The notes beneath the pieces were generated by a model, which did not search any database, was not told the origin of the DNA, and saw only the letters and a list, made by a program, of their open reading frames with translations. Of a DNA stretch of 64,000 bases, positions 1 to 32,932 are shown in pieces. A program made the translations under genes and the position numbers. Every line of letters begins with the position of its first letter. The stretch's first letter is position 1. Origin of the DNA: Macrostomum lignano (taxonomy: Eukaryota); contig NIVC01000530.1 of the NCBI GenBank assembly GCA_002269645.1, positions 248,001-312,000 on the forward strand, read 5' to 3'.

Positions 1-398
1 CATTGTGCGAGTATCTAGATACTAGTGGTAGCTGTCTGGACATTTTGCGAGTATCTAGATACTAGTGGTAGCTGTCTGGACATTTTGCGAGTATCTAGAT
101 ACTAGTGGTAGCTGTCTGGACATTTTGCGAGTATCTAGACACTAGTGGTAGCTGTCTGGACATTGTGCGAGTATCTAGATACTAGTGTTAGCTGTCTGGA
201 CATTGTGCGAGTATCTAGATACTAGTGGTAGCTGTCTGGACATTTTGCGAGTATCTAGATACTAGTGGTAGCTGTCTGGACATTGTGCGAGTATCTAGAT
301 ACTAGTGTTAGCTGTCTGGATATTGTGCGAGTATCTAGACACTAGTGATAGCTCTCTAGACATTGTGCTAGTATATAGACACTAGTGGTAGCTGTCTG
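1..398. repeat. 40-bp minisatellite (~10 units, runs off window start) in the intron upstream of the GINS2 last exon
   Basis: Unit CATTGTGCGAGTATCTAGATACTAGTGGTAGCTGTCTGGA read directly; contains the 14-bp palindrome AGTATCTAGATACT. Confidence 0.95.
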
Positions 399-436
399 TA
401 AGTGTCCCATCCCACCTGCGCACCTGCCCCACCCAG

Positions 437-970
437 GTACCGCTGTGGCTGGCCCTGGCCCTTCGCACCAAGCAGCGCTGCAGGATCACGCCGCCAGACT
501 GGCTCTCCGTTGAGTCCCTCGCCGAGCTGAAAGAACGCGAAGAATCCGAACAATTATTCACCCCGGTGTCGAGTCCGCATTTCCGAGAAATTGCTTCACT
601 GTTGCTGCAACACGCCCCGGAAGATGTGCCGCATTCCGAGCGGATCCGAGGCCTGATCAAGGATATCTGGGATTTGAGGATGAGCAAACTGCGCCTGAGC
701 TTTCAGTTGTTTCTTAATAGCGACGCCGCATCGGCCAGGCTGACGCATCTCACTAGGATGGAGATCTACACAATGCGCGCGTTTTTAACCAAATCGCTGG
801 ATCAGGTGTTCAAGCTGCGGCATTCGGATAAAACTGTGCCAGCCCAGGCCGCTGAACAGGTTGCTGCCAGCAATGCCAGGACCAGGCGGGCTGCTGCTGC
901 GGCTGCTGCTGCTTCTGCTGCTTCTTCTAGTAGGGGCGGAGCTGCCGGATCTTCCGGTGTGTCACAATGA
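437..970 (+). CDS. GINS2: DNA replication complex GINS subunit 2 (PSF2), last coding exon; 5' exons lie outside the window
   Basis: Acceptor CCCAG|GTACCG at 437, in frame with ORF 566-970: VPLWLALALRTKQRCRITPPDWLSVESL...FTPVSSPHFREIASLLL...IRGLIKDIWDLRMSKLR...ARLTHLTRMEI. This matches the recalled PSF2 motifs VPLWLA, PPEW, DIWDxRxxKLR and LxxLTxMEI. Confidence 0.93.
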   Translation, partial: VPLWLALALRTKQRCRITPPDWLSVESLAELKEREESEQLFTPVSSPHFREIASLLLQHAPEDVPHSERIRGLIKDIWDLRMSKLRLSFQLFLNSDAASARLTHLTRMEIYTMRAFLTKSLDQVFKLRHSDKTVPAQAAEQVAASNARTRRAAAAAAAASAASSSRGGAAGSSGVSQ

Positions 971-2577: not shown

Positions 2578-5500
2578 ATGAAAAGTACGCTTTGGCAGTT
2601 GCTGCCTCTGCTGCTGAGCATGCGAGTTGCTGCATCTTTGGACTGCTCCGATGTGAATCGCACGGGTGAGTCAGCTGCAGCTCAAAGACCAGCAATGCAA
2701 GGCTGCAAATCTTTTGAGATAAATATTTCAGTGACCGTGCAGCTGAGCAGGGCTGACGTTCTGCGCACCTGGCAACCCAGCGGTGCGCACTGCCGTTGGT
2801 GGGAGAGTCGGCAGTCGGAGACAAACCGATTCCCTGCTGCTGTGCGGTCCGGGCCTCGGTGGCTTGTGATGCAGCTGAGGCAGCCGATGATGCTGGAGGC
2901 GGTGAGCGTACGAGACTGGGGTGAGTGACGCTGACCGACTCATTCTCATGATGTATGATGAGGTAGAGGGAGTCTGGTATTAAGAAAGCCTTGTTAAGTT
3001 ATAATGAATCGACGTTTATTGAGTTTTGAGAAAGATAGCAAAAGAAAGGGTTAACATGGAATTTAGCACTGGCGTAGCTCAAACAAAACTTAGTGGTACA
3101 GGTAAGGGAGTCGAAACCATAGATATAATTAAGAAGTCTGTTATAGAAAATTCTAGAAGGAAAACTTGGATTCACTTACTATAAATATAAAGTTGACTAT
3201 TTTAAGATAAACGATTACTTAACATCTTTAACACTCCCACTTAATGTTTAGCTTAAAAACTAGTGCATACTGGTACAAACAGTTCATATTGTGTCTTGAA
3301 TATCAAAGTTAGATAAAGAGTTAGCAGTTATATTAACGAACAGGAATCAGTTCCTTGAGCACTTGAAACTTGGCATTAGACAGTGCTTTAGTAAGAATGT
3401 CAGCGATCATCTCCTCTGACGGACAGTAAATTAGCTTTAAAGTTCCACCGACCAACTTCTCACGCACGAAATGGTGACGGATATCAATGTGCTTAGAACG
3501 ACTGTGGAAGACAGGATTCCTAGCTAGAGCAATACAGCCTTGATTGTCTTCTAGGATAGTAACGTATTTGAGACTTTCTACGCGAAGATCTAGTAGTAAC
3601 TGTTGTAACCATGTGGCTTCTTGGGTAGCAGCTGAGAGTGCCATGTACTCGGCCTCCGTCGTCGATAAGGCTACAGTTTGTTGCTTTTTGCTACTCCAGC
3701 TAATCGGACATTCAGCCAACTTGAAGATGTATCCGGTTGTAGAACGTCGGTCATTGTGATCTCCAGCCCAGTCTGCATCGGAATATCCAATTAGATCGAT
3801 TGCACGCGAGTCCTTCTGAAAAACCAATCCTGATGAAATGGTTCCCTTTAGATATCTCAGGACACGCTTCACGCCACTCCAATGCTGTTCAGTTGGGTCT
3901 GAGAAATATCGCGCGAGAACTCCCACTGCAGATGACACATCTGGTCGTGTAGCTAGTGCTGCGTAGTTTAGACTTCCTACTGCCGCCTGATACATAGTCT
4001 TGTCCACCTTAGCATCACAGGTCTGTGTAGTGTATAATTTGACACTTGTGTCCATTGGTGTTGATACCGGTTTGCAGTCCATCATGTTGAATTTAGAAAG
4101 GATGGTATTTAGATACCACTCTTGGTTTAGAAACAATGAACCATTCTTCCAGGTAGCTTGAATTCCAAGAAAATAGTGAAATTCGCCTAGATCCTTCATC
4201 TTAAATTTAGATTGCAGTTCTTGCTTCAGCACGGGCATGTAGTCGTCAGATGCTGTTAATAGAATGTCGTCCACATACACACCGATCGCAGATTGAGAGT
4301 TGGCATAGATACACGGTTCTGACTTTGCCTGCACTAGGTTAAGACTTAAAAGTTCATCATGTAGAGTTTGATTCCAACATCTAGGAGCCTGCTTGAGTCC
4401 ATATAGACTTCTTTCTAGTTTGCATACTAGTGTTTCCTTGCCTTGCACCACAAATCCTTCCGGTTGTTCCATGTAAATTTCTTCGTCTAGTTTGCCGTTT
4501 AAAAATGCTGTTACGACATCCATCTGGTGAATTTTCCAATCTCGTTGAACTCCAACAGCCAGTAGAGTTCTAATTGATGTAAATCGAGCTACTGGTGCAT
4601 ACGTCTCCTCATAATCTACTCCATGCTCTTGAGAGTATCCTTTGACTACCAATCTTGCTTTGAATCTGTCTACTGAGTTGTCTGCCTTATACTTGACACG
4701 AAATACCCACTTACAGCCAATAGTTTGACGTCCTTTTGGTAGCTCAACCAGTTTCCATGTTCTGTTCTCCATCAGTGACTCGTACTCTGCGTTCGCAGCC
4801 TCTTGCCAGTCTTTAGAGAATGAGCTGTCCAATGCTTGCTGTAGAGTTTTCGGTTCGTCAATTTGTGTTGCAACGGATGCCACGTACCTGTCAACGGGCT
4901 TCTTCTCTCGAGTTGATCTCCGAACTTCTTGCTTGTCGACAGTTTCAGGAACACATTTAAAATCAGACGATGCTGGTTCGGTACCTGCATTCAGTTGAAG
5001 TGTCTCCTGCTTCTCCACTAATTGCTTCACGAAGCACGACTCTTGGAACGTTACATCGCGACTGACGAAAACTGATCGTGTTTGGAAATCAAAACAACGA
5101 TATCCTTTTGAGGTTTCCGAGTATCCAATAAATCTGACTTCCCGAGCTTTTGAGTCAAACTTGTGACGTTTCTCAGCTGGGACATGCGCGTAGGCAACGC
5201 ATCCAAATACTCGCAAATGCTGAACACTCGGCTTGCTGCCGGTCCAAATTTGATATGGTGTCGCTTTGTTGACTGCACTCGTTATTGATCGATTACGCAG
5301 ATATGCTGCCGTAGAGATTGCTTCTGCCCAGAATTCCTTGCCAATATGAGCATGTGCAATCATTTTTCGTGCTGCCTCCACCAAGGTTCGGTTCATTCTC
5401 TCGGCTACTCCGTTCTGTTCAGGAGAGTGTGGGACAGTAGTCTGGTGAATGATTCCGTTTCGGGCACAGAATGCCTCAAATTCTCCCGATGTATACTCTC

Positions 5501-8500
5501 CACCATTGTCAGTCCGAAGAATCTTGATAGACTTGTCTGTTTGATTCGTGACGAGAGCCTGAAAGATCTTGAATTTATCTAAGACTTCTGACTTGCTTTT
5601 AATGAAGTAAACTGAGCAATAGCGCGAATAGTCGTCAATAAATGTGACAAAATACTTTGATCCTCCAATTGACGTAGTTTGCATGGGACCGCACACGTCA
5701 CTGTGAATTAGACCCAATAGTTCAGTTGACCTTGACGTTTCACCCTTTGCAAATGGCGTTCGATGTTGCTTTCCTTCCACACATGCTATGCAGAAACTGA
5801 TGCCTTCAGTTTTTACTTCATCCTTGCTAAGCTCAATTCCGTCCACTTGCTTTCCATTAATTAGAGATTTCAGGTCTTGCTCACCTAGGTGTCCATAGCG
5901 CTGATGCCATAGGTCGATGCTGTTGTTTCTCGCGACAGATGCAGTCTCGTTAGTTAGGTTAAAGCCTTTCAATTTGTACAGTCTGCCAACTTTCAAAGCT
6001 TCTCCAACAATCTTACCAGTTGCGCTCAAAATCTGACACTTGTCGTCGCTGAATTGTACACTGAAGCCTTTTCTTGTAACTGCTGATACTGAGAACAAAT
6101 TCTGTTCCATAAGTGGTACATATAGAACGTCGCTCAGCTCGCACAATTTCTTACCAGAACCAGTATTGATATACAACCGAACGGTTCCCTTTCCAGTGGC
6201 TTCGAGCTTATGTCCATCTGCTAGCGTAATGTTCTCCAGTACCGAAAAATCTTCAAATTTCTCAAAACTTGTCCGATCATTAGTCATATGATTCGTTGCG
6301 CCTGAGTCCACAATCCATGTACTAGACTCGTTAGCTGTCGATGATGTGCCCATAGACAACGCCGGAAATGCAGAATCTTCCTCATCTGAAGCTGAAAAGT
6401 CCTTTAAGTCTTTTGCTGGGGCGTCTGCAATCCTCGCCTGATGCCTTCTGTTGGATATCTTCAAATCCTGTGGTCTTGAATTTGTGCTCGATCCACCTGT
6501 CACAGAGAGGCTATTCTTGAATTTGTAACAGTGCTTCTTTAGGTGACCAGGCTTATTGCAGAAAAAACATACTTTTGGTCTGACACTCTGGTGCTGTTGC
6601 CTCTTGAATCCAACCAGAGCCTTTGAATTGCTGCTAGGTTCACAGCTTTACTGTTCAAGTCGTTTTGACTCCTCGTGCAAAAGCCGCTCGAGTACGAAAT
6701 TCATCGTCAAGTCGTCCGCTCGCGATTCCAGGGCAGTAATCAACCCGTCATATGACTTCGGCAAACTGTTTAGCAGAATCGTGACTTGATAGTCCTCGGG
6801 AACACCTGCCCCGATAGCCGACAGTCGTTTGACGATATCCTTGAACTGATTAACATGCTCCTGCATGGATGCACCTTCCACCATCTTGAGCGCTTGTAGT
6901 TTCCGATTAAGAAACAATTTATTTGCCAGCGAACTGCGCTCGAAATATGCTTGAAGCTTATCCCACGCTTCCTTCGGAGTTTCTGCATCCTCAATTAGAT
7001 GAATTTGACTATCCGCAACAGCCAATACGATAGTCGCTAGGGCTTTGTTCGCACGCCGCTTGAACTGAACTTTGACCTCGTTGGTCGCGTCCTCAGCAAG
7101 TGTCTCTGTACCATCAACAACTTCCCAAAGTTCTCGCTCCATCAGGACGTTCTTCATCTTGAACTTCCAGACAGTGTAGTTGGAACTATCCAACTTCTCA
7201 ACCAGTAGTTTGGCATCGAAAGACATCGTGTCGATCCACCAGCACAACTGGACTGCTGAGCTTGAACTTTCTAAGAGACGGTAGAGCCTGACAATCACGC
7301 CGACTGACGCACTGCCACTGAAGCAGCTTTATTATTCACACTGCAGTAGATCGCAGTGGAAGGGGCGCAGGGCCCATAACCTATTAAGAAAGCCTTGTTA
7401 AGTTATAATGAATCGACGTTTATTGAGTTTTGAGAAAGATAGCAAAAGAAAGGGTTAACATGGAATTTAGCACTGGCGTAGCTCAAACAAAACTTAGTGG
7501 TACAGGTAAGGGAGTCGAAACCATAGATATAATTAAGAAGTCTGTTATAGAAAATTCTAGAAGGAAAACTTGGATTCACTTACTATAAATATAAAGTTGA
7601 CTATTTTAAGATAAACGATTACTTAACATCTTTAACATCTGGGACACAGAGTGTGAGACGGTGTGTGAGACCAGCTAGCATCTAATTAGCACTCTGAGAC
7701 AGTGTGAGACCAGCTAGCATCTAATTAGCACTCTGAGACAGTGTGAGACCAGCTAGCATCTAATCAGCACTCTGAGACAGTGTGAGACCAGCTAGCATCT
7801 AATTAGCACTCTGAGACAGTGTGAGACCAGCTAGCATCTAATTAGCACTCTGAGACAGTGTGAGACCAGCTAGCATCTAATTAGCACTCTGAGACAGTGT
7901 GAGACCAGCTAGCATCTAATTAGCACTCTGAGACAGTGTGAGACCAGCTAGCATCTAATTAGCACTCTGAGACAGTGTGAGACCAGCTAGCATCTAATTA
8001 GCACTCTGAGACAGTGTGAGACCAGCTAGCAGCCAAGCACTCGTGTTGCAGATGGCCAGTTGCACGCAGCAGCTCCGGTCGGCTCGCCCGTGTCAGCGGT
8101 CGGAGCCTCGAGCCTCCCGCTGGAGCTGCAGCTGGAGGATCCGTGCCGCGCCAGCTGGGAGGCCTTGAACGGTAGCGACCGCTGGCGGAGTCTTGATGGC
8201 TCCAGCGGCACCGCCATGGTGAGTTAAAGAGGCAGCTGTTTGCATGCTGCACATTTTGCACATTCTGAAGAACTCAGACATTCTGAGCACTCCTCCTTCC
8301 AGCAGCCAGTGGCCTTCCTTCTGTTCAGCAGCTCCCAGCCTCTCCAGTGGAGCGCTCTCAATCTTGCAGGTGAGGTCTTTCAGCTCAATGCTTTGATTTG
8401 CAGGTCACTGAGTTCATTTTACCTCCGCATCCTCAGGCCGCACGGCCCCAATGCAGCTGAAGGAGACCAGAAACCCATTCTGCCTGAACTGCGAGCCCCT

Positions 8501-11500
8501 CACGTGGAGACCCGGAGATCGCATTGGCTTCTCAGTGAGCAGCTGCGGCTCCCAGACTCCGAGCTGCTCAGTTCGACTCGCGGATGGCAGCAGGCGGGAG
8601 GCTGAGTTGGTGAGCGACTGGCCGGTCTTGCCTGACAGATTTTCCACTTTGAGGCTGAGATCTCAGGGCATTCTGTGATTTTCAGCTGATCTCAAGACCT
8701 GGCAGTGATCGGATTCGAGTCACCCATTTTGAGTACTTTGTGAAGGAGACGGAAATTCCGCGGACTCTGACGTGCTGGCAGGGGGACCCAGCGGCTCTGC
8801 AGATTGAGAGGGAAATCGCTGTGCCATGCAAGTCTAGAGATTTGCTAATGCAGCTGTCATTCAGGGCTCTGTACAGTTTTACACCTATAAATCCATTTGT
8901 ATGCACTTTTAATTGTAGCTAATGAGGGAAGCTTCACTCTATCGGTCTCTCCGGTGTGGGTTTCGGGCAGGAAGATTTTCTTAGAAGCCGAAGCGCAGCG
9001 ATTCTTTCCGGAGCCCAGGATTCAGTGTTCGATCAGGGCGGTGACGGAGCAGCCTTTGAAAGTTGAGAGTCAGGTGAGGACAGGTGCACTGTCTTTGAGT
9101 GAACGATACCGCTGACAGCACGAGTTGGTCTGCAATCTGACCACCACGCCACAACCCCAAGTTCCCAGTCACCGCGCCACCGCGCCACCGCGGCCTATCC
9201 TGACACAAAGCACACGTAAAATGCAGATACCCCTCATTCTATGTCGTTTAACTTTCAGAACGGGTCTGTAGTGAAGGACAATAAAAGCAGGGTTCTGCTG
9301 TCAGTTCGCTCAAGGTTCAGCTTTCACGCATCGCTCTCAATGCACGGAGGCCAAATTCTGTGCTGGGTGAATCTAACTGGAGGCGAAGATCGTGTTACGA
9401 GTACTTTGAAAAACTTAAATCACAATATAGCGCAGATAAGCGGTGAGAAATGTGGGAAATAATTTTTGTTTTCAATATTTAATTAATATGACCCCTCACC
9501 CAGCCAGCGCTCACCCAGCCACCCCTCACCCAGCCACCCCTCACCCAGCCACCGCTCACCCAGCCACCCCTCACCCAGCCACCCCTCACCCAGCCACCCC
9601 TCACCCAGCCACCCCTCACCCAGCCACCCCTCATCCAGCCAGCCCTCATCCAGCCACCCCTCATCCAGCCAGCCCTCATCCAGCCACCCCTCACCCAGCC
9701 ACCCCTCACCCAGCCACCCCTCACCCAGCCACCCCTCACCCAGCCACCGCTCACCCAGCCACCGCTCACCCAGCCACCCCTCACCCAGCCACCCCTCACC
9801 CAGCCACCCCTCACCCAGCCACCGCTCACCCAGCCACCCCTCACCCAGCCACCCCTCACCCAGCCACCCCTCACCCAGCACCCCTCACCCAGCCACCCCT
9901 CACCCAGCCACCGCTCACCCAGCCACCGCTCACCCAGCCACCCCTCACCCAGCCACCCCTCACCCAGCCACCCCTCACCCAGCCACCCCTCACCCAGCCA
10001 CCCCTCACCCAGCACCCCTCACCCAGCCACCCCTCACCCAGCCACTCCTCACCCAGCCACCCCTCACCCAGCCGCTCGCTCGCACTGCAGAGCCGTGCCA
10101 GACGGCCGTAGACCTGGGCTCGAGTCCGCACTGGAAGGTGGGCCAGACCCGCCACATCGCAGTGACCTCCAGCGCCTGCAGCATCTGGAACGTGAGCCAC
10201 AGCTGCCGGCTGCTGCAGGCTGATGGCGCTTCACCCGTGCCGCTCCGCAGAGTTGAAGTACGCTTGCACTGAGACTGGCCAAAGTGCTCAGAGAAGTGCA
10301 GAGCCTCACCTGTCCCAATCTGCACCCTCATTCGCATTGCAGCAGAGCAGCTTCAGCAGCGCTCACCAGCTGCAGGTGAGCAGGTCGATGGCTCACCAGA
10401 ACTGGTCCGTTCGCTGCAGCGTCAACCAGTCAGGTGTGGTGTATGATGACGCTGAGAGTCTGGAGCAGCTGCGACCGCCGATTTTCTGTGAGTGCCGAAC
10501 AGTGAATGAAGCGAGTCAGCTGTGAACGCTTTGCTTGAATGCGATTTCCAATTTCACTGCAGACCCGGCAAGCATTCAGGTAAATGGCAGCATTGAGAGC
10601 TCGCGACTGCACCTGGCTGTGGCTGCCTCCGACGCTCGGCCTCCGGTGACATCCGTAAAATGCTTAATTTCGAGTTCTATTGTGAGCAGTAGCTTTCATA
10701 TTTGTTGTTGGTTTTTCTGTTTGAAATTATTCGCAAAAATTCGAACGATTTATTTTCTTCCTGTCTCCAGCAAGTGACTTTGCACAAGCAAAGCGATGCC
10801 AACACGTGGAGTTTTGATGGCGATGGAGGTCGAATGAATGTTTTATACAGAAGGCAGCACCTCGCTGCATCGAACATCACTATCTACTGCACTGCCCATC
10901 AGGTGTCAACGAATGGCAACCTGATATTTCAGAGCCACAGCTCGAAACAAATTTACGTAGCTGAATCGATTGGCACTACGGATCTGCCAAGCACTCAATC
11001 AGTGAAGGCTGTTGAGTCAAAGGGTATGGGGCTTGAGTCGCACTCATTGTTCTAACATGTCTATTGAGAACATCGGAGCTAATCAACCTTCAAGAAACAC
11101 ACTAGCTGGTAAAATTATTGCTGCAGGTCCATTCTCAACCGTGTACGCCTTACCACTGTCGCACCTGCTCGTTGCGTCCGCTTCGGTGATAGCCGTAATT
11201 GTGATGGTGGGCATTGCCTCAGCTAGGATTGCCTGGGTAAATAATACCTTTTTTGGATAGCTTTTAGTAAGTAGCTAAGTAAGTAAGTCAGTCAGTCAGT
11301 CAGTCAGTCAGTCAGTCAATCAGTCAGTCAGTCAGTCAGTCAGTCAGTCAGTCAGTCAGTCAGTCAGTCAGTCAATCAGTCAGTCAGTCAGTCAGTCAGT
11401 CAGTCAGTCAGTCAGTCAGTCAGTCAGTCAGTCAGTCAGTCAGTCAGTCAGTCAGTCAGTCAGTCAGTCAGTCAGTCAGTCAGTCAGTCAGTCAGTCAGT

Positions 11501-11822
11501 CAGTCAGTCAGTCAGTCAGTCAGTCAGTCAGCTGTTCACCTTGCAGAGAGTGTCCCGGTCCCGATTAGCCGCACTGGCTGCTCAGCGCAGAGGCCCCGGC
11601 GCACTTCGGATGCAGTCGCTGGCAGCCGCGGCCTCTGCAGGCGCCGGCAGCAGCGCGTACGACTACCCGTCCACGAATGCGACAGCTCAGGGCAGCAGGA
11701 GCCACAGTGAGGCCGGAGAGTCCAACAACATACCCAGTGTCTACTTGGTGCTCACTCCGTCCAGAAGGTCTCAGCAGCAGCAGCAGCTGGTCAGCAGCTT
11801 TGAGCCGAGGCAGCAGAGCTGA
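2578..11822 (+). CDS. Receptor A: 14-exon type-I membrane protein (744 aa): signal peptide, discoidin-like N-domain, 4 Ig-like domains, TM, Tyr-motif tail; appears intact
   Basis: Exons 2578-2665, 2732-2920, 8052-8218, 8303-8369, 8437-8609, 8686-8827 (GC donor), 8919-9073, 9259-9442, 10091-10257, 10343-10487, 10563-10681, 10771-11023, 11127-11236, 11547-11822. All phases are compatible, the total is 2235 nt and open, and the structure is the same in A'. Leader MKSTLWQLLPLLLSMRVAA; TM LLVASASVIAVIVMVGIASA; tail has YDYP and SVYLVL. Domain names are motif-level inference. Confidence 0.85.
3333..7226 (-). CDS. Copia gag-pol polyprotein, one reading frame interrupted by a single TAA at 6648-6650
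   Basis: Gag MSFDAKLLVEKLDSSNYTVWKFKM; zinc knuckle CFFCNKPGHLKKHC (after the stop, same frame); protease WIVDSGATNHM; GAG-pre-integrase LWHQRYGH; integrase IHSDVCGPM/LRTDNGGEY/NGVAERMNRTL; RT QMDVVTAFLNG, YVDDILL; RNase H YSDADWAG, RSKHIDIRHHFVRE. Confidence 0.95.
7370..7381 (-). promoter_or_regulatory. Copia primer-binding site for the 5' half of initiator tRNA-Met
   Basis: GGTTATGGGCCC directly abuts the 5' LTR and is complementary to the anticodon-stem region (GGGCCCATAACC) of tRNAiMet, as in Drosophila copia. Confidence 0.85.
7660..8030. repeat. 39-bp minisatellite array in intron 2 of A (~9-10 units)
   Basis: Unit GAGACAGTGTGAGACCAGCTAGCATCTAATTAGCACTCT, ending in the exon-3 acceptor region. 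Confidence 0.95.
9491..10073. repeat. 15-bp C-rich minisatellite (CACCCAGCCACCCCT)n in intron 8 of A
   Basis: Direct reading; shorter paralogous array at 42418-42667. Confidence 0.95.
11287..11531. repeat. (TCAG)n microsatellite in intron 13 of A
   Basis: Direct reading. Confidence 0.97.
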
Positions 11823-14920: not shown

Positions 14921-19512
<4,592 letters not shown>

Positions 19513-20362
19513 TTGCATGCTGCAAGGGTAATTTATTCTCAATTATCAACGTTAAGGCACTAAAGACTAAGATAAGTAGAAAAGGCGATACAATACAATG
19601 TGGTCAGCCATGATTTGTTTAATTGCTCGTTACGTGAATACCTAGTATTAAATCTAAAATGATTATGTTTTTCAAGTTTTGATTTATAATTTTAGTGCCA
19701 ATCATTTGGCGTTTATCACGAGGCAGTTGGTGTTTATCAATCCTTTTTTCACCAAACACACAACTTCACTTCACCTTTACAGTGTAAGCGAGTTCACTTT
19801 TCTTTATTAGCTTATAAAGTATTCGAAGCACTGAGAGAAACCATATATTGCAACTGTAATTTCGTCCTCACTGGACAGTTTACTACTATCGCGAACATGC
19901 TTGGCTTGAAGTAAAACAAATTGAATAAAAATATCTTGACTGCTGTGTCAGTTGCTTTGGCTAATACAAAATACAGGAGTTAAAGAGTTTTAAATAAGCC
20001 AAACTGATTGAAGTCAAATGTAAGGATTTAAATATTCACTTGAGTACTTAAAATAGCCTTTGTAAGAACAGTCCATTTTTCATGGACATTAACTGTAGCA
20101 GCAGTTCACGGCAATCGCCAGAGAGCGGTATTTGATGTAAACAAAGCAGGCAGTCATTAAATCTTCAAGTCTCGAGGCTGCATCCATCGAACACAGCATA
20201 AAACTTCTGTCAGAAAAACAACATCGGTGAAATTTTTCTTTACCTGAAGATTCGACTTTACATGATGGGTTTTTACAAAATTTTGCTGTGGCTGCTGCTC
20301 TGCAACACGAAATTCACCGACGGCAACTCAGACTGCTCGTCCACGAGCCAAGCCGGTGAGGC

Positions 20363-20450
20363 CAGCTGGCATCTAATGAGCACCCTGAGACAGTGTGAGA
20401 CCAGCTAGAATCTAATTAGCACTCTGAGACAGTGTGAGACCAGCTAGCAG
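20363..20450. repeat. 39-bp minisatellite remnant (~2 units) in D1
   Basis: Same unit as in A. Confidence 0.9.
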
Positions 20451-23400
20451 CCAAGCACTCGTGTTGCAGATGGCCAGTGGCTCGCAGCAGCTCCGGTCGG
20501 CTCGCCCGTGTCAGCGGTCGGAGCCTCGAGCCTCCCGCTGGAGCTGCAGCTGGAGGATCCGTGCCGCGCCAGCTTGGAGGCCTTCGGCAGCAGCAACCGC
20601 TGGAGGCAGATTGGTGTGAAAGTAGTAGATCAAGTAAGCTGCTTCATTTGAAGTATCTTAGCCTAATAATGAAATTAATAAATCCATCCATTCCACACTT
20701 CAGCCCGTAGTTCTTTCCTTGTGCAAAGTAGCTTGAGAACTGCTGGACTGAGCTGGAGGGCCGTCTCATTAACAGGTGTCTGAGAAATTTTGAAGCAATC
20801 ACTGAATCATAGCTTATTGTGAATTAAGTGCTTTAGAAGCAGTTGCATTTTTTCTTGTAGGTCGCTTTCTACCGCTGAGCCTCACAATAACTGACAACCG
20901 TTTTTGCCCTCTGAGAGACCTGTCCGCCTTGCACGATGGAGTTGAAGCCTGCTTCTCTGTTTCAAGATGCACCAGCGAATCAATTCGATGCTTCTTTAAC
21001 CTAAGCAATGGCGCAAATCTGGAGCCGAGACTGGTCTGCTCAACTCTTCTTTATAGCGAGCTATCAATAATTTTTCTTGCACTGGCTTAATACAAAATTC
21101 GTTTTTTCAGCTACGAAGCCAAAAGCAGCAAGCTGAATTCGAGTTCACAGCCAATTTCTCGCTGCACGGAGCACTGCTCACCTGTCTTCTGCCTGATCGG
21201 CCAGGGATTCGAATCGAGCAGACCATTGGAATCGTTGGTGAGAAAGAAGTGTCTGCCGGAGTTAAAAAATGTATTTAAAGTCCGCTTTGAAGATTACAAA
21301 TCGAAACATGCACTTTTCAGTCACACCAAGTGTTGAACTGTCGTTATCAACCGTGTGGGTGATTGGTCGCAGAGCCAAGGTGTACTTTGTCTCAAGCCCA
21401 GCTTATCCTCCTCAGCAGCACAGGTGCCAAATTATCTCTGACAGCAGCACCTGGGAACTGAATGAGCATTTTAGTAAGGTAAGTAGTATTATATTATTGT
21501 TGAAAATGCTGTACCTTGCCCAATCATGTACTTTTCCATGAAATAAACTTCCAGACTAGACAGGCTTATATCAGGAACAGCATCAACATGTCGCTAACTG
21601 AAGTGGAGTCTGAATTTGTTGTCACAGTCACGTCAGCCATGCTGAGGGGCACCGTGAGATGCAGTAGCAGCTATAAAAGTACAAGTCAAGGAGAAGTCAA
21701 GAAAGATATCGATATTTCAAGCATCAGTGGTAAGTGCTTGCATTAGAGAATCTCCTATACGCCCGATTGGAAGAGCCATAAGATCTCCTCATTTCAGAGC
21801 CTTGCACAACTGCCATTCGTGTAGACAACATCCAGTACTCGTATCAGGTTGTACAAGTGACGTCACAGAAGTGCAGCATTTGGAATGTTCAGCACAGCTG
21901 CTGGCTTGTCAAGCCCAAAGAAGATGTCCTGGAGCATCCAATTAAGCTTGCTGTACGGTTCTTTGATTTTGTAATAATGCTTACTATTCAGAAGTTACTG
22001 CAACAATATCTGATGTCTTCTATTGCAGCAAGACGGCTTCAGCAGCACTCACAGGTTGAATTTTATGAAACAAGAGCAGAAAAGAGACTGGCTAGTGAGA
22101 TGCAGCGTTAATCAGTCGGGAGTGACATACCCGGATGTGGAAATTGAGTTAGCAAGCGATGCTGACAGTGAGTCAAACGATGCATTCAATCACTGTTAAT
22201 ATTTCCAATGCAAGTTCAAAGGTTTTTTACCACTTGAATCTACACTACACGTTGCTACATTTGTACTCATATTAATACGAGCGTAATGCAAGAGACCAGC
22301 GAGCACCCCGACGCTACGTCTTCGGCGACCTTGTCCCGCAATCAGCTGCCCGTTCCGCTCACTCCTGATCACATACGAGCGTACGAGCGCCTCAATACTG
22401 CACTCAGGCACGCACTCATACGCACGCTCCCACAGGGTGTACAGCGGCCCTGACTTTCTAAGCGTCAGGCATGTACCTCTCTGTGCCTTAAGGGCTGGTC
22501 CTCATAAGCACTGAGCACGTTTGCTCTACTCACCTCCAGAATAAAAACAAATGAGCGTTTTTAATCGTATTCTGTTGGCTGCCATTAAAGCGACTTTTGA
22601 TAACAGTCAACCCACAGCCAGCGTGGAGTCGACCCAAATTAATTGGCCATTCCACATGTAAGCACTCGAGAGTGCGTACTTAAGCAACTATTCTTAATCG
22701 TTAAATTTTCAGGTAGTGTATCTTCATTTGCTTATTACCCCTACTTTGAGGTTGTAACTGTTGCGAGCCTAAGTGTTCGATGTGTAACTACTCTGCCACT
22801 TATCAACCCCTCTGTCTTCAGCTTTCTACTATCAGTGGGGACTGAGTTGCATAATTTTGCTGATTTTATCTGCCCTCGGCCTCATCCTGAGCTGCATGAT
22901 TATTCGAAGAATTCGCCGCGCTAAATCAGCAAAGCGAAACTCGACTTCAAGTAGAAGTTCGACATTCCCAGGACGACGTACCCTCCTCTCGAGTTCGGCC
23001 ACCTCGCCGCAGGCACAGGTAGGGTTAGCCACATATTTAGTTTGTACATTAGGGCACGCATGTAAGTGTCAAATACTGGTGTTTTGATGAAGAATAGCTT
23101 TAAACTAAAAGAAAATTCTAGCTACCAGGGGTTGTTTCGGCTATTCGCTCAAGCACTTTTGCTACTGGCTTTTGCCTGAAACTGAAGCTCTTTCTTAGAA
23201 TAGCCTGGACACAGATTGCCTGGTAAATAGCGCTGCTTATCTGATCAGAATTCAGGTGTGCACTGAAGCACAGTTCTAATAAGAACTTCTCTCAGCCTGA
23301 GCCGCGATATTGCCTAATTCCATGTGACTGTAAAATTCAGCAGTGAATTCCGGTGCATCTAATACCAGCTTTTCTAGAGCTAGATCCACTTTTGTTTCTT

Positions 23401-24030: not shown

Positions 24031-24300
24031 GTGTCAGCTGTTAGACATTCGTGTGTCAGCTGTTAGACATTCGTGTGTCAGCTGTTAGACATTCGTGTGT
24101 CAGCTGTTAGACATTCATGTGTCAGCTGTTAGACATTCGTGTGTCAGCTGTTAGACATTCGTGTATCAGCTGTTAGACATTCGTGTGTCAGCTGTTAGAC
24201 ATCCGAGTGTCAGCTGTTAGACATCCGAGTGTCAGCTGTTAGACATCCGAGTGTCAGCTGTTAGACATTCGAGTGTCAGCTGTTAGACATTCGTGTGTCA
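24031..24300. repeat. 22-bp minisatellite GTGTCAGCTGTTAGACATTCGT (~12 units)
   Basis: Direct reading; absent at the homologous position of D2. Confidence 0.93.
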
Positions 24301-25858
24301 GTCTGCGTCCTTGCGCTGATCGAAATGCTTGCAATTTGTAGGCCAATCAATTTATTTGTTATACTTGTAAACTCCCTAGTAATCAAGTGACTTCTAGACT
24401 CGAAACGGGTCTGTCATTTGAGACCGAAATTTTATTATTCCATTAGATCAAGACAACTATTCACCCATCAGTACAACCGTATTACTTTCGTATATAATAG
24501 CAATGGTTTGATAGTGGGAATAAAGATTTGGATTTATGCTGTAGCATGACATTGATGGAGCATATTTGGCTTGCCTACGCAATTTCTCAACTGTGAACAT
24601 TCATGCTGCTACAGGTAGCATCCCAGCGCAATGCTGTCGAGACCTTCCAGGTGCCAACTCTGCTGAACGAATTCGCAGTTCACAGCGACGGAGCGTCCGC
24701 TGGCAGCAGCGAATACGACTACCCAACTGGAGAACGCGACTCAATTTGCATACCAACAGGTGCCGTTACTTCCATCACGACTCAAACTGCTGGCTGAGAG
24801 CTAGGTGTACAGTCTGGAAGTGAAACTTGAGTCTTCTTTGAACTTCACTGCTGACCTTGGTGCATGCAGAGTTTATCCACGCTATTATAAATTCAGTAGT
24901 AAGCTTGCATATGAGCTCTGTGTGTATTGCAGCTCGCTATACAGTTATTCAATGCTAATATGATTTACAAGCAGTTTGTACTTTCTCTGGAAATTTGCAA
25001 TATAGTATCTGTGAACACCATTCATCGATTCATAGTGATTCAAACCTAAGAAAATATAACAACCGAATTTCTGATTTCCTATCATAGAGCTGCTTTGGTA
25101 TCAGCAGAGACGATGCAAACATTTTGCCATTATCGATATTTCCTTCATTCTGTCCGAATATAATATATTAAATCGCAAACCAACTCACAAATTTAGCAAG
25201 ATATCTGAGATGTTCTCGGATAGAAAGCTTGATCTGAAAGCTTGAGCGTATCTCTATCTGATCCGGCGCAACTGCAGAAGTTACCAACATTTGTAAACAG
25301 TAGACAGATTCTAGGAAAATCAGTGGTCTGCTGTAATTAATTATAATCTTGCACTTCTTACGTGAATTTCGTCCATCAAAACAGCCTTTGACTAACTGTG
25401 AGGCTAGCAAAGGCAAGCGTGTCAGAGGTCGCTTTTAAAAGCTAATAAAAGCCATGGATTATTGAATACGTTCGAGCAACGAGAAATTATGATCACTGTG
25501 ACGTTACACCGATCCGCCCAAAAAGCTTCTGAACAATCGCTTGAAAAACCATAGTTTACGTGTATATCCAAGTTTTAATCGCATTTCTGCTTGTAGCACC
25601 TGATTTTTTGCTGTTTTAGATTTTAGTAGTTTTGAAAGAACTTGGAGCCCTAACGCACTTGAAAACCTGCAACCTGCAATCTACCGTAAATACCTAGAAA
25701 CAACTTATTTTTAGCGTATCGGACTGGCTGAAAGCGCCACAGCGATTCTAATCAGATTTATAACTTGAACCGGAATGTGATGTCTCTCACCAAAGCGTAC
25801 AACCAGAAACTCACCGGCTGGGTCCTTCCTGGCTCGATGCTTCTTCCGAAAGAAAGGT

Positions 25859-26887: not shown

Positions 26888-29800
26888 ATGAAAATTTCGC
26901 TCTGGCAGTTGCTGCCTCTGCTGCTGAGCATGCGAGTTGCTGCATCTTTGGACTGCTCCGCTGTGAATCGCACGGGTGAGTCAGCTGCTTTTAGGGGCAG
27001 CTCAAAGTCTGGCAAGGCAAAGCTGCAAATCCTTTGCGCTAAATGTTCCAGTGTCAGTGCAGCTGAGCAGGGCTGACGTTCTGCGCACCTGGCAACCCAG
27101 CGGTGCGCACTGCCGTTGGTGGGAGAGTCGGCAGTCAGAGACAAACCGTTTCCCTGCTGCTGTGCGGTCCGGGCCTCGGTGGCTTGTGATGCAGCTGAGG
27201 CAGCCGATGATGCTGGAGGCGGTGAGCGTGCGAGACTGGGGTGAGTGACGCTGACCGACTCATTCTCATGATGCATGATGAGGCAGAGGGAGCCTTGGAC
27301 CCAAAGTGTGAGACAGTGTGAGACCAGCTAGCATCTAATTAGCACTCTGAGACAGTGTGAGACCAGCTAGCATCTAATTAGCACTCTGAGACAGTGTGAG
27401 ACCAGCTAGCATCTAATTAGCACTCTGAGACAGTGTGAGACCAGCTAGCATCTAATTAGCACTCTGAGACAGTGTGAGACCAGCTAGCATCTAATTAGCA
27501 CTCTGAGAAAGTGTGAGACCAGCTAGCATCTAATTAGCACTATGAGACAGTGTGAGACCAGCTAGCATCTAATTAGCACTCTGAGACAGTGTGAGACCAG
27601 CTAGCATCTAATTAGCACTCTGAGACAGTGTGAGACCAGCTAGCATCTAATTAGCACTCTGAGACAGTGTGAGACCAGCTAGCATATAATTAGCACTCTG
27701 AGACAGTGTGAGACCAGCTAGCATCTAATTAGCACTCTGAGACAGTGTGAGACCAGCTAGCATCTAATTAGCACTCTGAGACAGTGTGAGACCAGCTAGC
27801 ATCTAATTAGCACTCTGAGACAGTGTGAGACCAGCTAGCATCTAATTAGCACTCTGAGACAGTGTGAGACCAGCTAGCATCTAATTAGCACTCTGAGACA
27901 GTGTGAGACCAGCTAGCATCTAATTAGCACTCTGAGACAGTGTGAGACCAGCTAGCATCTAATTAGCACTCTGAGACAGTGTGAGACCAGCTAGTATCTA
28001 ATTAGCACTCTGAGACAGTGTGAGACCAGCTAGCATCTAATTAGCACTCTGAGACAATGTGAGACCAGCTAGCAGCCAAGCACTCGTGTTGCAGATGGCC
28101 AGTGGCACGCAGCAGCTCCGGTCAGCTCGCCCGTGTCAGCGGTCGGAGTCTCGAGCCTCCCGCTGGAGCTGCAGCTGGAGGATCCGTGCCGCGCCAGCTG
28201 GGAGGCCTTCGGCAGCAGCGACCGCTGGAGGCCGATCGGGCGTGGCGAAGCGGTGAGGCAGGTGCAGCAAATGTTTGGTTTTCTTTCCACCTCAAGCCAA
28301 TCACGTTTCACTCCAGGCTTTGACAACGTTTATCCGGCTACTCAGCGAGAGTTCGCTTGCTTGGCAGGCCATAAATATCTCAGGAAGGTTGCTCATTTCT
28401 TTTTACTAATTTCATTCAGTCTTTTATGTATCGGTGATAAATATTTTCAGGCCGCTATGCCGTGATGCGCATCAACATGAGCCTGTCCAGTCACCTGCTC
28501 TTCCATCGGCTCGGCCTCTTCGTCAGCGAAGACGCTCAACGTTCGACTTCCTTTTTCTTCCTAGACAGCTGCAGCTTCGACAAGGCCGCCTGCTGGCTTT
28601 CCAATTCTTCTGGAAGAATTGTCAGCACCACGCTGGTGAGCCGTCATCAAGGACCTTGGCTGCCATGTTTTCAAGCATGCATTCGATTTTGCATTCAGTA
28701 GGCTAAGAAAATTCTCAACTGGCTTCAGGTTGGCTCATCTCGAGCTGATGCCAATGGGATTCGGACTCACAAGTTCGAGATTAAAACTCTACCTGGTGAC
28801 CACGGCAAGCTGCTGCAGTGCGGCTTGAGCACTTCTCAAGGCCCTGTTCTGCTTGAGAAGCTTCTGTTGTGGGAAGGTGCTCTTCTTTTGCTTTTTTTGA
28901 ACTTACCGGCTGGCAGTTAGAATTGCGGATCATATTGCTGCTGAAGTTTAGGGATAGATTGAGAGGCTGACAGAGATAACAGACTCAGGTGTACCATTGA
29001 CAGTCTGTGAATAAATTTATCCATTTTTAACGCTATGTAAAATATAATCACTTTAGTTCCAGTCAAAGCTCTGCACATCTCAGCTTTGCCAGTCCTGGTT
29101 GCTGGGCAGCTGGCAAAGCTCAGCGTGTTCTCAGACTCCCTGCCTGAGGCTCAGCACCGCTGCTTCATCGAGAGGCCGGAGTCGCAGCGAAGTAGAAACC
29201 TCACTGCTCTTAGCACTGTAATTTCCTGACAATCTCGAATACATTGCCTGCGCGTTTCCAAAAAATGAACTTGTTATTGATTTTCAATTTCAGAGCCAGT
29301 CAAAAACAATCGACAGCACGAACAGAATACTCGTCAGAGTGCGCTCAGAGTTCGGCTTTAATGTATCGATGGCTGATCGAAACGCCAGCATCGTGTGCAA
29401 AGGAACTGCTGAATCAGAAAGGAAGGAAACTGCTTGGAATGGAAGCATTTCAGAAATCAGTGGTACGCATATCATAACTCTTGGAGAAAATATGATAATG
29501 ACGCAAAGAAGAATAAAAAATTTAACAGGATTTTTTGTTTATTCACTGACATTCTAACATTCCAACACTCCGTGTGTTCCTCATTGGCTCCTAAAGTCCT
29601 CTTGACCACCCTGAAAAGTCTGAACATAAGTATGTATCATCAGCCTATGCTTCATCTTTCAGAGCCCTGCGAGACAGCCGTGGACTTGGGACCGGAGAAA
29701 TTCTGGCTGGCGGGGCAGACCAAGCTGGTTCAGGTGATCTCTAAGCGCTGCAGGAATGTGAGCCACAGCTGCTGGCTGAAACTGAATGGCGATTCCCCAC

Positions 29801-31256
29801 TGCTTCAGAAAGTGCAAGTGAGCTTCGGGTAGTCGAGGCGATGGCCCGTCAGAATTGGCAGGTTTTGTGCAGCGTCAGTCAGTCTGGAGTTGAGTACAAT
29901 GACTCAGAAAGCAGTCTGAGGAGTGCACCAGATGTTTTTAGTGAGTCATTTTAGCCACTTTAATTCGATGTTGCTATTTAATTGAATTGAAAGAAAATCA
30001 AAAGTCGAATCTTTCTTGCCATTGAAAAAACCTCAAGGCGAAGCCAGCAAGTCAACGCTTGAACTCGCGTTAGCCTACGTCGGTAACAGTCAGTCTGAAG
30101 TGAGCGTGCATGCAGTTGATCAAAATGAAAACCAAAACGCACTACTTCCGGTCTACAGCATCAACTGCTCAGTTGCGGGAGATGAGGCGTCGACAGAGCT
30201 GAGCAGCAGCAATAGCAGTAGCACTGAGTGGTACGGCTTACTGAAACTGAGATGGAACCGCTCATCTGTGAACGTCTGCTGCTCCAGTTACCAAACCTGC
30301 ACTGGATTGACTGTCTTTAAGTCTCTGCAGTGCAAATCTTTAACCCAACAGCCCATTGGTAAAGATGGTGAGCAGATGTTTGTGGTTAGTGATTCACAGT
30401 CATCGTCATTAACCGATGAGCAGCATTTGATCGGCTTCTATTAAGAGAATGCCCTAGCTCTGTTGGTAGTCAGCCTTTGGTGATTTTCTAAGAAACGGAG
30501 TGTCCTGTCCTTCTACCATAGTCGTCTTTGATAGAAACAGGAAGTTCTCAACTGGAGATACGAGCGTAATTGAAATATGGGTAGCTAAGATATGTTATTA
30601 ACATGACCTAATAGTAGCGCATAATGCTTCCCTGAAAATTGCAGCTCAGTGGGACGATCGCTCGGCAAGGTTTCTCTCGCTTCTATTGGCTTCTATACTG
30701 GCTTCACTAGTTGTGGGCTTCCTTCTGTCTACAATATACCACAAATCTGGTATGCTTTTTACCTGCGAGAGAAATCCTGTGAGTCATATTTAAGTCATTT
30801 CAAAATTCAATTTAAAATCTGCCAGAAAGTGTTTCACGTCATTATTTCGTACCATTTATGGTGCTGTGTTCATGCATACTCCATAGATCAAAGTTCATCA
30901 TGCATATTTTCTTAATGCTTCGACTATGAAATTGCGATTTTTAATTTATCCTTTATACATGGAATGAATCCTGTAAGCTTGCAAAATTTCAGCCACAGAG
31001 AGGTCACACTGGACTGCGAAGTCAGCACAATGCAGGTCAGACCGTCCCAATGCGAATGCGGAACAACTTCGCAGTGCAAAGTGACTCACACGGCAGCAGT
31101 GAATACGACTACCCAACCACTGAGCAGCCAGGAAGCTGCAAAAATGAACAGTTGGGTAAAGAAGGTGCCTACACACAGGTGCTGCTGGTTCCTTTACAAC
31201 AGGGACCACTGAATGAAGGTCGGGTTTACGTCAACCAGACTGAAAATGCTACTTGA
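26888..31256 (+). pseudogene. Receptor E1 (Ig-type family) with an A-type leader; ~123-bp deletion fuses exon 9 to mid-exon 10 and gives a premature TAG at 29830-29832
   Basis: Leader 26888-26975; exon 2 27052-27240; later exons collinear with E2; junction GTGAG/CTTCG at ~29822; TM exon 30645-30778 (FLSLLLASILASLVVGFLLSTIY); tail 30993-31256 with SSEYDYP, AYTQV and VYVNQ. Confidence 0.75.
27308..28075. repeat. 39-bp minisatellite array in E1 (~19-20 units)
   Basis: Same unit as in A. Confidence 0.95.
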
Positions 31257-32932
31257 GTCAGTTGAGCATTAAAGTAAAGAACTTGAGACTCTGTGAGATC
31301 TATTTTGACATTGTTGCTTGCCGAGTGCACCAGTGTCCAATATTCAGTTATGCGAGCCATAATTAAACACTTCAAACCGATTCTGACTTGGCAACAAGTC
31401 GGTACTGCTATGCTTAATAATGACCAATACTGATTTATCACTTTGTGCACTATTAGCTCTGATTTGTAGATCTTTTTTGGAAAAAAGTTATGTAAACTGA
31501 AGCCTCGGGATTCGGAATTGAGAGACAAGGAATCGATATATAATCTGTGGTAAAACGAGTGTTAATTTCACTATTGCTGTTATGCGTCTTATCATGCATG
31601 GCTGCTGGCTGCTTATCATACTCTTCGAAGTTATGCATATAAGCGGCTTGACCAACCTCTCTGCTGCTTTGTCTGCAGTGGTCAGCTTGGTTTCCGTTCT
31701 TGCTTGCAGGAAAACAGAAAAACAGTAGTACACATTTCTGTGTCTATTAGAAAGTAACTTTTTCAAACGGCCCTTTATCTGATGTTATTCGAGTGCTCCC
31801 ATAACAATAATTAAACTCGATTTTCTTGGTCAAGAACCCAAATATTTCTTTGTTTCGAGTTCAAAACTCATTTAGCAGGTTTATTTGTTGATTCTAGCAA
31901 ACACTTTGAAAAAGTGCCGAAGCGTTTAGAAGTGAAATTTTTAAAGGCCACTCGACCCACTGCATTACAGCGCTGCACATCTCGCGCGTGCTTTTACTTG
32001 AACGATTGCTCTAACTGTTCTCAATAAATTTGTAGCCAACTGTCTTGAGCCTTTGAGACGCTGAACTGATAGCTGTAGTTTTTCGTTGCGGTCGGATTCT
32101 TCATTGGTAGACTGTAGATCCGGTTTATAGTACTTGTACTGTCAGTAGCAGTGGACCGATTTCTGGGAAATACGCTCGTAGCTATGTGCTCCAAAGCAAA
32201 ATGGGAGGACAGCATCAAAACTCAACAATGGGCTTAATAGCCAAGCAGTATAGGTCATTGGTTGCGTAGCTCGTACATGTATATACGGTGAACGGGTTAT
32301 TATTATTATAAACGGACTTATTTTTCGACACAGGAGGGTTGGACAAATCAAGTCCTAATCGAAGGACTTACCACAGCCTTAAACATCTTTGGAAGCACTG
32401 AGCACGTGATTGCGTAAGGTTTTGTTACTCGTTAAGATTGCTCGTTTACAGGTGTGAAACGCTAAGGGCTTTCGGCAACCTAGTCTACTGTAAGCGTGCG
32501 TGATTGATGCGTGTGATTGATATCATTTTAGGGGATCGATGGGTGCGCACAGTATGATGGATTAAAATTCATGCAACGATTGTTCATGTCGGTTTCTATA
32601 GGTCAACTGAATTTTCGATTGCTTATGTAGAGCTAATATTAGTCATATTATATTTTCAGCAGTTTTCCAAACGCATTTTCTTACCTTTCTGTTGTCACTG
32701 CACTCTACATGGGTTTTTCTTGTACTTTGGCTCGACTCTTATCTCTTTTGCTTGAAAATGTGCAGTATATGCTGAAGCAAATATTACAAGGTAGAATTTT
32801 TGTATAAAATACAGAAAAGCCAGACAATGATACTTGATTTAGAAAAAAGTAAATTGGTAAAAGCTAATTACTAACTAAAATAAAGTACGGCTTTTGGATT
32901 CGAGTACGTCTACGGGCTCGAATCATTTTGCA

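Follow-up and report, generated by a model that had tools for sequence, protein, structure and literature searches.

A window of 64,000 nucleotides from the flatworm Macrostomum lignano (contig NIVC01000530.1 of assembly GCA_002269645.1, positions 248,001 to 312,000) contains six tandem genes, A, D1, E1, A′, D2 and E2, of a family of probable type I receptors. The receptor bodies of these genes fall into divergent subfamilies, while one internal cassette is nearly identical in all of them, including at synonymous and intronic sites. The cassette consists of exon 2, the unique ends of intron 2, a 39-bp minisatellite array within that intron and the first ~115 nts of exon 3, which amounts to ~350 bp around the array. 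Interlocus gene conversion limited to the cassette, combined with crossover between non-allelic copies, is the best explanation of this pattern and one in which considerable confidence can be placed.

The cassette in the window

In gene A, the cassette and its surroundings are organized as follows (positions are counted from the first letter of the window).

2578..2665, + strand: exon 1 (leader), MKSTLWQLLPLLLSMRVAASLDCSDVNRT, ending in phase 1 (gene model with GT/AG sites)
2732..2920, + strand: exon 2, the 5′ coding half of the cassette, 189 nts, phase 1-1
2921..2977, + strand: shared 5′ end of intron 2, which resumes at 7638-7662 past a retrotransposon
7663..8031, + strand: 39-bp minisatellite of intron 2, 9.5 copies
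8032..8051, + strand: unique 3′ end of intron 2 and acceptor (…GCCAAGCACTCGTGTTGCAG), invariant in the six window genes
8052..8218, + strand: exon 3, with the cassette at 8052-8166, a mosaic transition at 8167-8190 and a subfamily-specific remainder

The acceptor boundary of exon 3 lies at 8051/8052. The five other window genes carry the following copies.

D1, + strand: leader 20262-20355; array remnant 20356-20447 (2.4 units); exon-3 part 20470-20584; exon 2 deleted
E1, + strand, A-type leader: exon 1 26888-26975; exon 2 27052-27240; array 27309-28074 (19.6 copies); exon-3 part 28095-28209
A′, + strand: exon 1 40134-40221; exon 2 40298-40486; array 40558-40894 (8.6 copies); exon-3 part 40915-41029
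D2, + strand, D-type leader: exon 1 53705-53798; exon 2 53881-54069 (H>N); array 54139-54352 (5.6 copies); exon-3 part 54373-54487
E2, + strand, F-type leader, mosaic: exon 1 60865-60958; exon 2 61048-61236; array 61311-61881 (14.6 copies); exon-3 part 61902-62016

Exon 2 is present in five of the six genes (all but D1), while the array and the exon-3 part are present in all six. An initial annotation, made from the window alone, had proposed that exon 2 encodes the same peptide in A, E1, A′ and E2, with a single H>N change in D2, and alignment confirmed this; in E1, the residue immediately preceding the peptide quoted there shows a T>S change. At the nucleotide level, 5 of the 189 nts of exon 2 distinguish gene A from the other four window copies, and nearly all of these differences are synonymous. 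Two 41-mers, one taken from exon 2 and one from exon 3, each occur five times in the window with at most three mismatches (0 expected in each case), and the D2 copy of the exon-3 41-mer, which has more mismatches, was located by alignment. The same annotation had described the start of intron 2, the array and the start of exon 3 as almost identical among the paralogues. This description was borne out, with six arrays of one unit and an extent of ~115 nts into exon 3. The start of intron 2 is nearly identical over its first ~45 nts in the window alignments, and the last 20 nts of the intron together with the first ~115 nts of exon 3 show 1-6 differences per 136 nts among the six genes.

The claim that the subfamilies are divergent immediately outside the cassette held in one respect and failed in another. 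Beyond the cassette, blastn between subfamilies gave no match within the window, and the best body exons show 47-54% protein identity between subfamilies. However, A, A′ and E1 additionally share exon 1 and intron 1 at 92-94% identity, and leaders related to exon 1 of gene A are found at 26888 (E1) and 40134 (A′). The 5′ edge of the shared tract in this trio is therefore the ATG and not exon 2. The 5′ edge of the cassette thus varies between copies, being located at the acceptor in D2, 27 nts upstream of it in E2 and at the ATG in E1.

D1 lacks intron 1, exon 2 and the start of intron 2, so that its leader exon abuts the array remnant. At the junction, the intron-1 donor GGTGAGGC is fused to the unit sequence TGTGAGAC, while exon 2 is retained in D2 and in L1d, a D-type gene on another contig. 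Because exon 2 is 189 nts long with phase 1-1, splicing from exon 1 to exon 3 in D1 is in frame, and by its gene structure D1 appears to be a natural variant without exon 2.

Copies on other contigs

Two family proteins were traced to GenBank contigs of the same assembly, NIVC01001776.1 and NIVC01000712.1, and these contigs, L001 and L002, contain six and two further cassettes, respectively.

L1a, on L001: body type I
L1b, on L001: body type I
L1c, on L001: A-like body, damaged
L1d, on L001: body type D
L1e, on L001: body type F, frameshift in exon 2
L1f, on L001: body type A
L2a, on L002: body type G
L2b, on L002: body type G

The cassette is common to at least seven body subfamilies on at least three contigs. 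The sliding-window comparison that the initial annotation had called for was performed as a profile of mean pairwise identity over 13 genes in 25-nt steps, and the plateau of high identity proved to be confined to the cassette.

Upstream of exon 2: 0.3-0.45
Exon-2 acceptor: 0.86
Exon 2 and the first 28 nts of intron 2: 0.94-1.0
From inside the array to 115 nts into exon 3: 0.94-1.0
Next 25 nts of exon 3: 0.73
Beyond the cassette part of exon 3: 0.35

Identity is thus lost ~115-140 nts into exon 3. Within the intron, the first ~28 nts are identical or nearly so across these 13 genes, and the ~25 nts preceding the array occur as two main variants that are spread over body types. A reading of this pre-array island as subfamily-specific was ruled out by that distribution. 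Because the pre-array variants are common to several body types, the cassette is continuous through the intron and forms one family-wide pool. The extent of this sharing is illustrated by A′, for which a comparison with L2b, a G-type gene located on another contig, gives 1 difference in 217 nts, versus 5 in the comparison with its own duplicate A.

Two of the copies on L001 are damaged. In L1c (L001 38078-38600), an array unit is fused to the middle of exon 3, so that this copy has neither the acceptor nor the initial part of exon 3, and its array units are a diverged 41-bp variant. L1c is probably a pseudogene. Its use as an example of a clean pseudogene that is still being homogenised was dropped, as its divergence from A′ is uneven along its length. 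Exon 2 of L1e (L001 55680-55870) is frameshifted relative to all other copies, which reflects either a pseudogene or a long-read indel error.

Divergence, selection and conflicting histories

Cassette divergence was measured over 353 nts, and the non-synonymous (dN) and synonymous (dS) divergence were estimated by the Nei-Gojobori method on 62 codons of exon 2 and 37 codons of exon 3. Between genes of different subfamilies, dS in the cassette is 0-0.085 and dN 0.004-0.027, whereas even the best conserved body exons are saturated, with a proportion of differing synonymous sites (pS) of 0.61-0.97. Synonymous divergence is therefore far from equal inside the cassette and in the flanking exons, and the earlier argument that selection at the protein level is insufficient to account for the identity stands. 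Between the recent duplicates A and A′, dS is 0.086 in the body (22 changes over 272 sites), 0.056 in the cassette and 0.097 in exon 2 alone. The synonymous sites of the cassette therefore change at an ordinary rate, with no hidden constraint. The exon-2 peptide is under purifying selection, with dN ~0.007, dS ~0.09 and dN/dS about 0.07.

The distance between two cassettes is independent of the body type and of the contig. Cassette divergence is 2.5% between genes with the same body and 2.8% between genes with different bodies (permutation p=0.13), and it is 2.7% within contigs versus 2.8% between contigs. In contrast, in the adjacent downstream 260 nts, divergence is 7.3% for the same body and 58% for different bodies, a difference reached in 0 of 5000 permutations. 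The GC content at third codon positions (GC3) is also raised in the cassette, at 0.73-0.84 versus 0.55-0.67 in the bodies, which is a supportive, although not a required, sign of biased gene conversion.

Counts of private sites revealed a tree switch in the grouping of A, A′ and E1 at the start of exon 2. From the ATG through intron 1, A and A′ group together to the exclusion of E1, with 13 sites private to E1 versus 1 private to A. From exon 2 to 45 nts into intron 2 the pattern reverses, with 1 site private to E1 and 6 private to A (Fisher p=8.5e-4). In addition, E1 is identical to its physical neighbour A′ across ~236 bp of exon 2 and intron 2. Other sites tell further histories. An H/L codon in exon 3 groups E1 with A and A′, and E2 with D1 and D2; the pre-array variant GCCTTGGACCCAAAG is common to E1, E2 and the A-type gene L1f; and variants of the intron flanks and of exon 3 cross body types. 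Sites 457 and 601 of alignment A1 are mutually incompatible, as are several other informative sites. Taken together, the low cassette dS, the body-independent distances, the tree switch and the raised GC3 support the proposal of gene conversion or ectopic crossover made in the initial annotation.

A mosaic gene and the shuffling of leaders and bodies

E2 is composed of two parts with different relatives. Its 5′ part is collinear with an F-type gene (window 59300-62040 with L001 53547-56388), while its 3′ part is collinear with E1 (window 61021-63866 with 27025-29961), and the two homologies overlap solely in the cassette, at 61021-62040. The 5′ collinearity belongs to a longer block, since the region 54520-62040, which comprises D2, its tail, the intergenic DNA and the 5′ module of E2, is 87-97% collinear with L1d, intergenic DNA and the 5′ module and cassette of L1e, a gene that carries an F-type body. 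The structure of E2 is what would be expected from a crossover, or a long conversion, resolved within the cassette. The bodies of E1 and E2 are block duplicates while their 5′ modules differ, E1 having an A-type leader with a diverged A-like promoter and E2 an MEHDLGF leader.

Several other combinations of leader and body are found in the family. The A-type leader precedes bodies of types A and E, and a G body has a leader distantly related to it; the MEHDLGF leader is combined with E as well as with F bodies; and two different leaders are found with F bodies. In L1f, which has an A-type body, homology to A′ starts 6 nts before exon 2. These combinations, together with the E2 mosaic, directly support the suggestion that the cassette could act as a shuffling hub between leaders and receptor bodies.

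The 3′ end of E1 (tail exon and flanks, 30340-31500) is 91-92% identical over ~1.1 kb to L001 28160-29301 and 76593-77484, both of which lie downstream of I-type cassettes (L1a and L1b). From these matches, family members appear to possess a second module, shared or shuffled, at their 3′ ends.

The 39-bp array

Arrays were called by Tandem Repeats Finder. The 39-bp unit forms six arrays in the window, all on the + strand (7663-8031, 20356-20447, 27309-28074, 40558-40894, 54139-54352 and 61311-61881), and all 56 units found in the window sit in these arrays (0 expected by chance). The 30-nt core of the unit is exact in 44 of the 56, and the consensus unit is the same in 14 of the 14 genes examined, while the copy number ranges from 1 to 33 units. 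Array length differs in every duplicate pair of the window, with 9.5 vs 8.6 copies in A and A′, 2.4 vs 5.6 in D1 and D2 and 19.6 vs 14.6 in E1 and E2. Homogenised flanks lie on either side of the array, and in 2 of the 14 copies (D1 and L1c) a deletion has one breakpoint inside it. No Chi-like core was seen in the unit on reading it by eye, Rfam gave no match for the intact A′ cassette, and a scan of metagenome and viral collections with the 39-mer returned no matches. The possibility that the array is coding sequence was rejected, as stop codons read from the unit close all six frames.

A causal role of the array in the exchange is plausible, on circumstantial support. Tandem arrays are very common in the window (42 Tandem Repeats Finder rows), and the link between array and cassette may therefore be a coincidence. 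A stronger proposal would make the array a cis-acting recombination initiator, at which breaks homogenise the N-terminal cassette and reassort promoter-leader modules with bodies, while the second module reassorts tails. This proposal is unlikely. If it were true, an initiator array would give this flatworm a recombination-based means of diversifying a repertoire of recognition receptors, in the germline or possibly in the soma.

Proposed mechanism and alternative explanations

We observe that the cassette is homogenised within defined edges, that the trees are incongruent, that E2 is a mosaic and that deletions are linked to the array, and from these observations we infer germline or meiotic conversion and crossover between non-allelic copies as the mechanism, with the array helping initiation. 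Repeated non-allelic gene conversion would copy the cassette among paralogues, so that it behaves as a single family-wide gene pool and stays ~97% identical, while promoters, leaders and bodies diverge past alignment. Conversion tracts would stop where homology stops, that is, at subfamily-specific exon-3 sequence on the 3′ side and at the exon-2 acceptor on the 5′ side, because intron 1 differs between leader types. The cassette would also be the site of unequal crossovers, because it is the only long homology between subfamilies. Crossovers resolved there would yield hybrid genes with the promoter and leader of one gene and the body of another, and E2 would be one such product.

Several points weigh against this explanation. 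Conversion is deduced from sequence patterns, no event having been directly observed, and all of the DNA comes from assemblies of one species. The informative sites per gene pair are few (1-8), and exon 2 of L1b, with 11-16 differences, has escaped homogenisation. Homogeneity over three contigs requires distant loci to exchange sequence, a less common event than exchange among neighbours, and the mosaic structure of E2 might in principle result from a chimeric assembly join at a 1-kb repeat. Moreover, nothing intrinsic marks the array as a hotspot: the unit has a GC content of 46% and is not GC-rich, and the single-strand DNA fold of three units is not unusual (z=0.36).

The pattern could alternatively reflect selection at the nucleotide level, without any exchange, if the region from exon 2 through intron 2 to exon 3 held an overlapping element, for instance a region that controls splicing, an enhancer within the intron or an RNA. 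Consistent with this, each 39-bp unit holds a predicted homeodomain-type site, CTAATTAG, the unit is the same in 14 arrays with its core mostly exact in the window, the first 28 nts of intron 2 are invariant and the exon-2 peptide is strongly purified. However, the dS of 0.056-0.097 between the cassettes of A and A′ matches that of their bodies, the variant sites are shuffled over body types instead of being fixed per gene, the tree switches at the start of exon 2, GC3 is raised, Rfam recognizes nothing in the A′ cassette and the damaged L1c and L1e keep near-consensus cassette halves, which makes this alternative decidedly improbable. The sharp 5′ edge at the exon-2 acceptor would also suit a mobile exon-carrying unit, either borne by a transposon or retro-copied, that recently entered genes already diverged, in a genome rich in mobile elements where an intact-looking Copia element with identical terminal repeats sits in intron 2 of gene A. 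A transposon origin of the cassette was nevertheless rejected, and the idea of a mobile unit is very unlikely as a whole: the position of the 5′ edge varies among D2, E2 and E1, the 3′ transition is graded, in frame and located within an exon that is homologous among all subfamilies in its remaining part, the viral and metagenome collections do not contain the 39-mer, and neither terminal repeats nor target duplications were seen by eye at the cassette edges in the alignments, where no dedicated repeat search was made.

Assemblies of M. lignano are known to be repeat-rich, and the cassette with its array forms 0.5-1.6 kb of ~97% repeat, so that collapse, chimeric joins or over-polishing could be suspected behind both the cassette identity and the E2 mosaic; the frameshift in exon 2 of L1e could likewise be a long-read indel error. 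Such an artefact is hardly credible given that every copy has private substitutions and its own array length, that the same pattern is found on three contigs and that the flanks on either side of each cassette are continuous with paralogous blocks. Finally, the array could be a cis signal for programmed, possibly somatic, recombination that reassorts leaders, cassettes and bodies for a recognition repertoire. The array is kept in every family member, hybrid genes and array-linked deletions are present, and the genes have another module in common at their 3′ ends, all of which would fit such a system. Yet ordinary germline conversion and non-allelic crossover explain everything that was seen, and a programmed process is highly doubtful.

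Comparison with known systems

The process is of a known kind, regional conversion combined with the formation of hybrid genes, operating here in a new family. Regional gene conversion in fugu protocadherins was argued from regional identity and raised GC3, and in the teleost protocadherin clusters of fugu and zebrafish the conserved part was proposed to serve a common function and the variable part specificity (PMC1852091). The M. lignano genes resemble these clusters in being tandem receptor paralogues with one coding part that is near-identical, including at synonymous sites, a divergent remainder and raised GC3. In contrast to the protocadherins, the flatworm tract is N-terminal in the protein and covers two exons and a minisatellite-bearing intron. 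In addition, the flatworm cassette is spread over its many body subfamilies and contigs and not confined within one subcluster, and the family is unrelated to cadherins.

In the human killer cell immunoglobulin-like receptor (KIR) complex, hybrid genes arise by non-allelic homologous recombination, and the loci contain minisatellites (PMC2816608). Both systems consist of head-to-tail receptor genes in which unequal recombination places the body of one gene behind the promoter and 5′ exons of another, with an effect on gene content. However, KIR genes are similar over their full length, including introns, and thus offer many crossover positions, whereas homology between the flatworm subfamilies is restricted to the ~350-bp cassette and its array, which leaves one available crossover site. 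No family relationship with KIR was shown.

For the sea urchin Sp185/333 (SpTransformer) clusters, flanking microsatellites have been proposed to promote recombination. Those genes, too, form a clustered, lineage-specific invertebrate family; they have a leader exon and introns of unusual similarity, and simple repeats are the proposed drivers of exchange. There, however, the repeats flank the genes and the mosaic lies in the second exon, while the flatworm repeat is intronic and in the middle of the tract.

In this invertebrate receptor family, concerted evolution is restricted to one region in a clean and quantifiable manner, and one short homology island is both kept uniform and used as a junction for new promoter-leader-body combinations. 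A large, modular and M. lignano-specific receptor family with tyrosine-motif tails is a candidate recognition or immune-type repertoire in an animal used as a model of regeneration and sexual conflict. As this flatworm can be bred and is amenable to transgenesis, the locus would lend itself to measurements of ectopic conversion and of the instability of a minisatellite.

The receptor family and its cluster

The window contains a tandem segmental duplication of ~37.5 kb, with 88-97% identity between the two blocks in a repeat-masked self-comparison.

Block 1: A at ~1.8-14.6 kb; D1 at 17.9-24.0 kb; E1 at 25.7-30.0 kb
Block 2: A′ at 39.4-49.2 kb; D2 at 49.8-58.0 kb; E2 from 60.6 kb to the window end

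The gene model of A has 14 exons, with every intron GT-AG, and an open frame of 730 amino acids. Its product comprises, in order, a signal peptide, an ectodomain, a transmembrane helix and a tail in which the motifs YDYP and SVYLVL occur. The protein encoded by exons 1-5 of gene A matches exclusively M. lignano proteins, and the source names of the matched proteins confirm the species. A profile search of 1.84 billion representative proteins returned 36 relatives, of which the nearer ones examined by name come from M. lignano. At least four of the weakest (P0031, P0037, P0040 and P0042) combine bacterial-type surface domains with immunoglobulin (Ig)-like domains, and look bacterial by this domain content. 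Pfam searches of seven family proteins gave no match over threshold, the sole match to an Ig domain being C2-set_2 at 14.3 bits versus a cut-off of 21. An AlphaFold2 model of the family protein P0004, built on a 13-row alignment, has a mean predicted local distance difference test score (pLDDT) of 49. Residues 170-265, which follow the cassette, form a confident all-beta region, and the cassette region has a pLDDT of 25-50; in this prediction, a beta-sandwich downstream of the cassette is the sole confidently modelled part. On the basis of the Pfam result, the restriction of relatives to M. lignano and weak bacterial-type proteins and the predicted beta-sandwich, the family therefore probably consists of orphan Ig-like type I membrane receptors with a beta-rich ectodomain and a tyrosine-motif tail. 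No description of it was found in the literature on M. lignano covering gene conversion, minisatellites, concerted evolution and immunoglobulin expansion.

Although D1 and D2 are block duplicates, their 3′ ends are unrelated (24031-25727 vs 57997-60551). The homology of the two genes breaks off at a 22-bp minisatellite (24031-24301), and the tail exon of D1 (24615-24794) has an SSEYDYP motif, while the tail of D2 (58064-58309) has DPVYEEV. Gene models of this family are unreliable. Several UniProt models skip exons or are without N-termini, and the GenBank model PAA64192.1 (P0024), which serves as a warning, covers 77 kb (L001 10001-87216), a range with five cassettes, and is probably a chimeric annotation. 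Upstream of the receptor cluster, an open frame at 392-967 (+ strand) has the N-terminal domains of GINS complex Sld5 and PSF2 in Pfam, corresponding to a PSF2/GINS2-like gene.

A Copia element and other repeats

Intron 2 of gene A, which is 5.1 kb long, is interrupted by a full-length mobile element that makes up 91% of its length and does not belong to the cassette.

2978..7637, - strand: Ty1/Copia long terminal repeat (LTR) retrotransposon inserted in intron 2 of gene A, not belonging to the cassette

Its two LTRs (2978-3233 and 7382-7637) are 256 bp each and 100% identical, and a 5-bp target duplication, TCTGG, is found at 2973-2977 and 7638-7642. Judging from the identical LTRs and the target duplication, the insertion appears to be very recent. 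The gag (6648-7298) and pol (3333-6503) open reading frames are separate, and their products match a protease-like barrel, an integrase and RVT_2 in Pfam, with the integrase ahead of the reverse transcriptase.

A stretch of 1061 bp is present twice in direct orientation (33034-34094 and 35132-36192), with 100% identity and at a distance of 2098 bp. The two copies may have arisen by a very recent tandem duplication, or they may represent the two LTRs of a small element that is non-autonomous. A 15-bp array, ACCCCTCACCCAGCC, is located in intron 8 of A and A′ (9491-10073 and 42418-42667). Three of its frames are open, and translation of the array would yield repeats rich in Pro, Ser and Thr; by the gene model it is intronic, and one frame continues into exon 9. 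Long tetranucleotide arrays are also present in the second block, (AGTC)n over 1.2 kb at 43856-45104 and (AGAT)n over 1.5 kb at 50231-51702, whereas their counterparts in the first block (11278-11531 and 17996-18468) are far shorter; simple repeats have been greatly resized since the block duplication.

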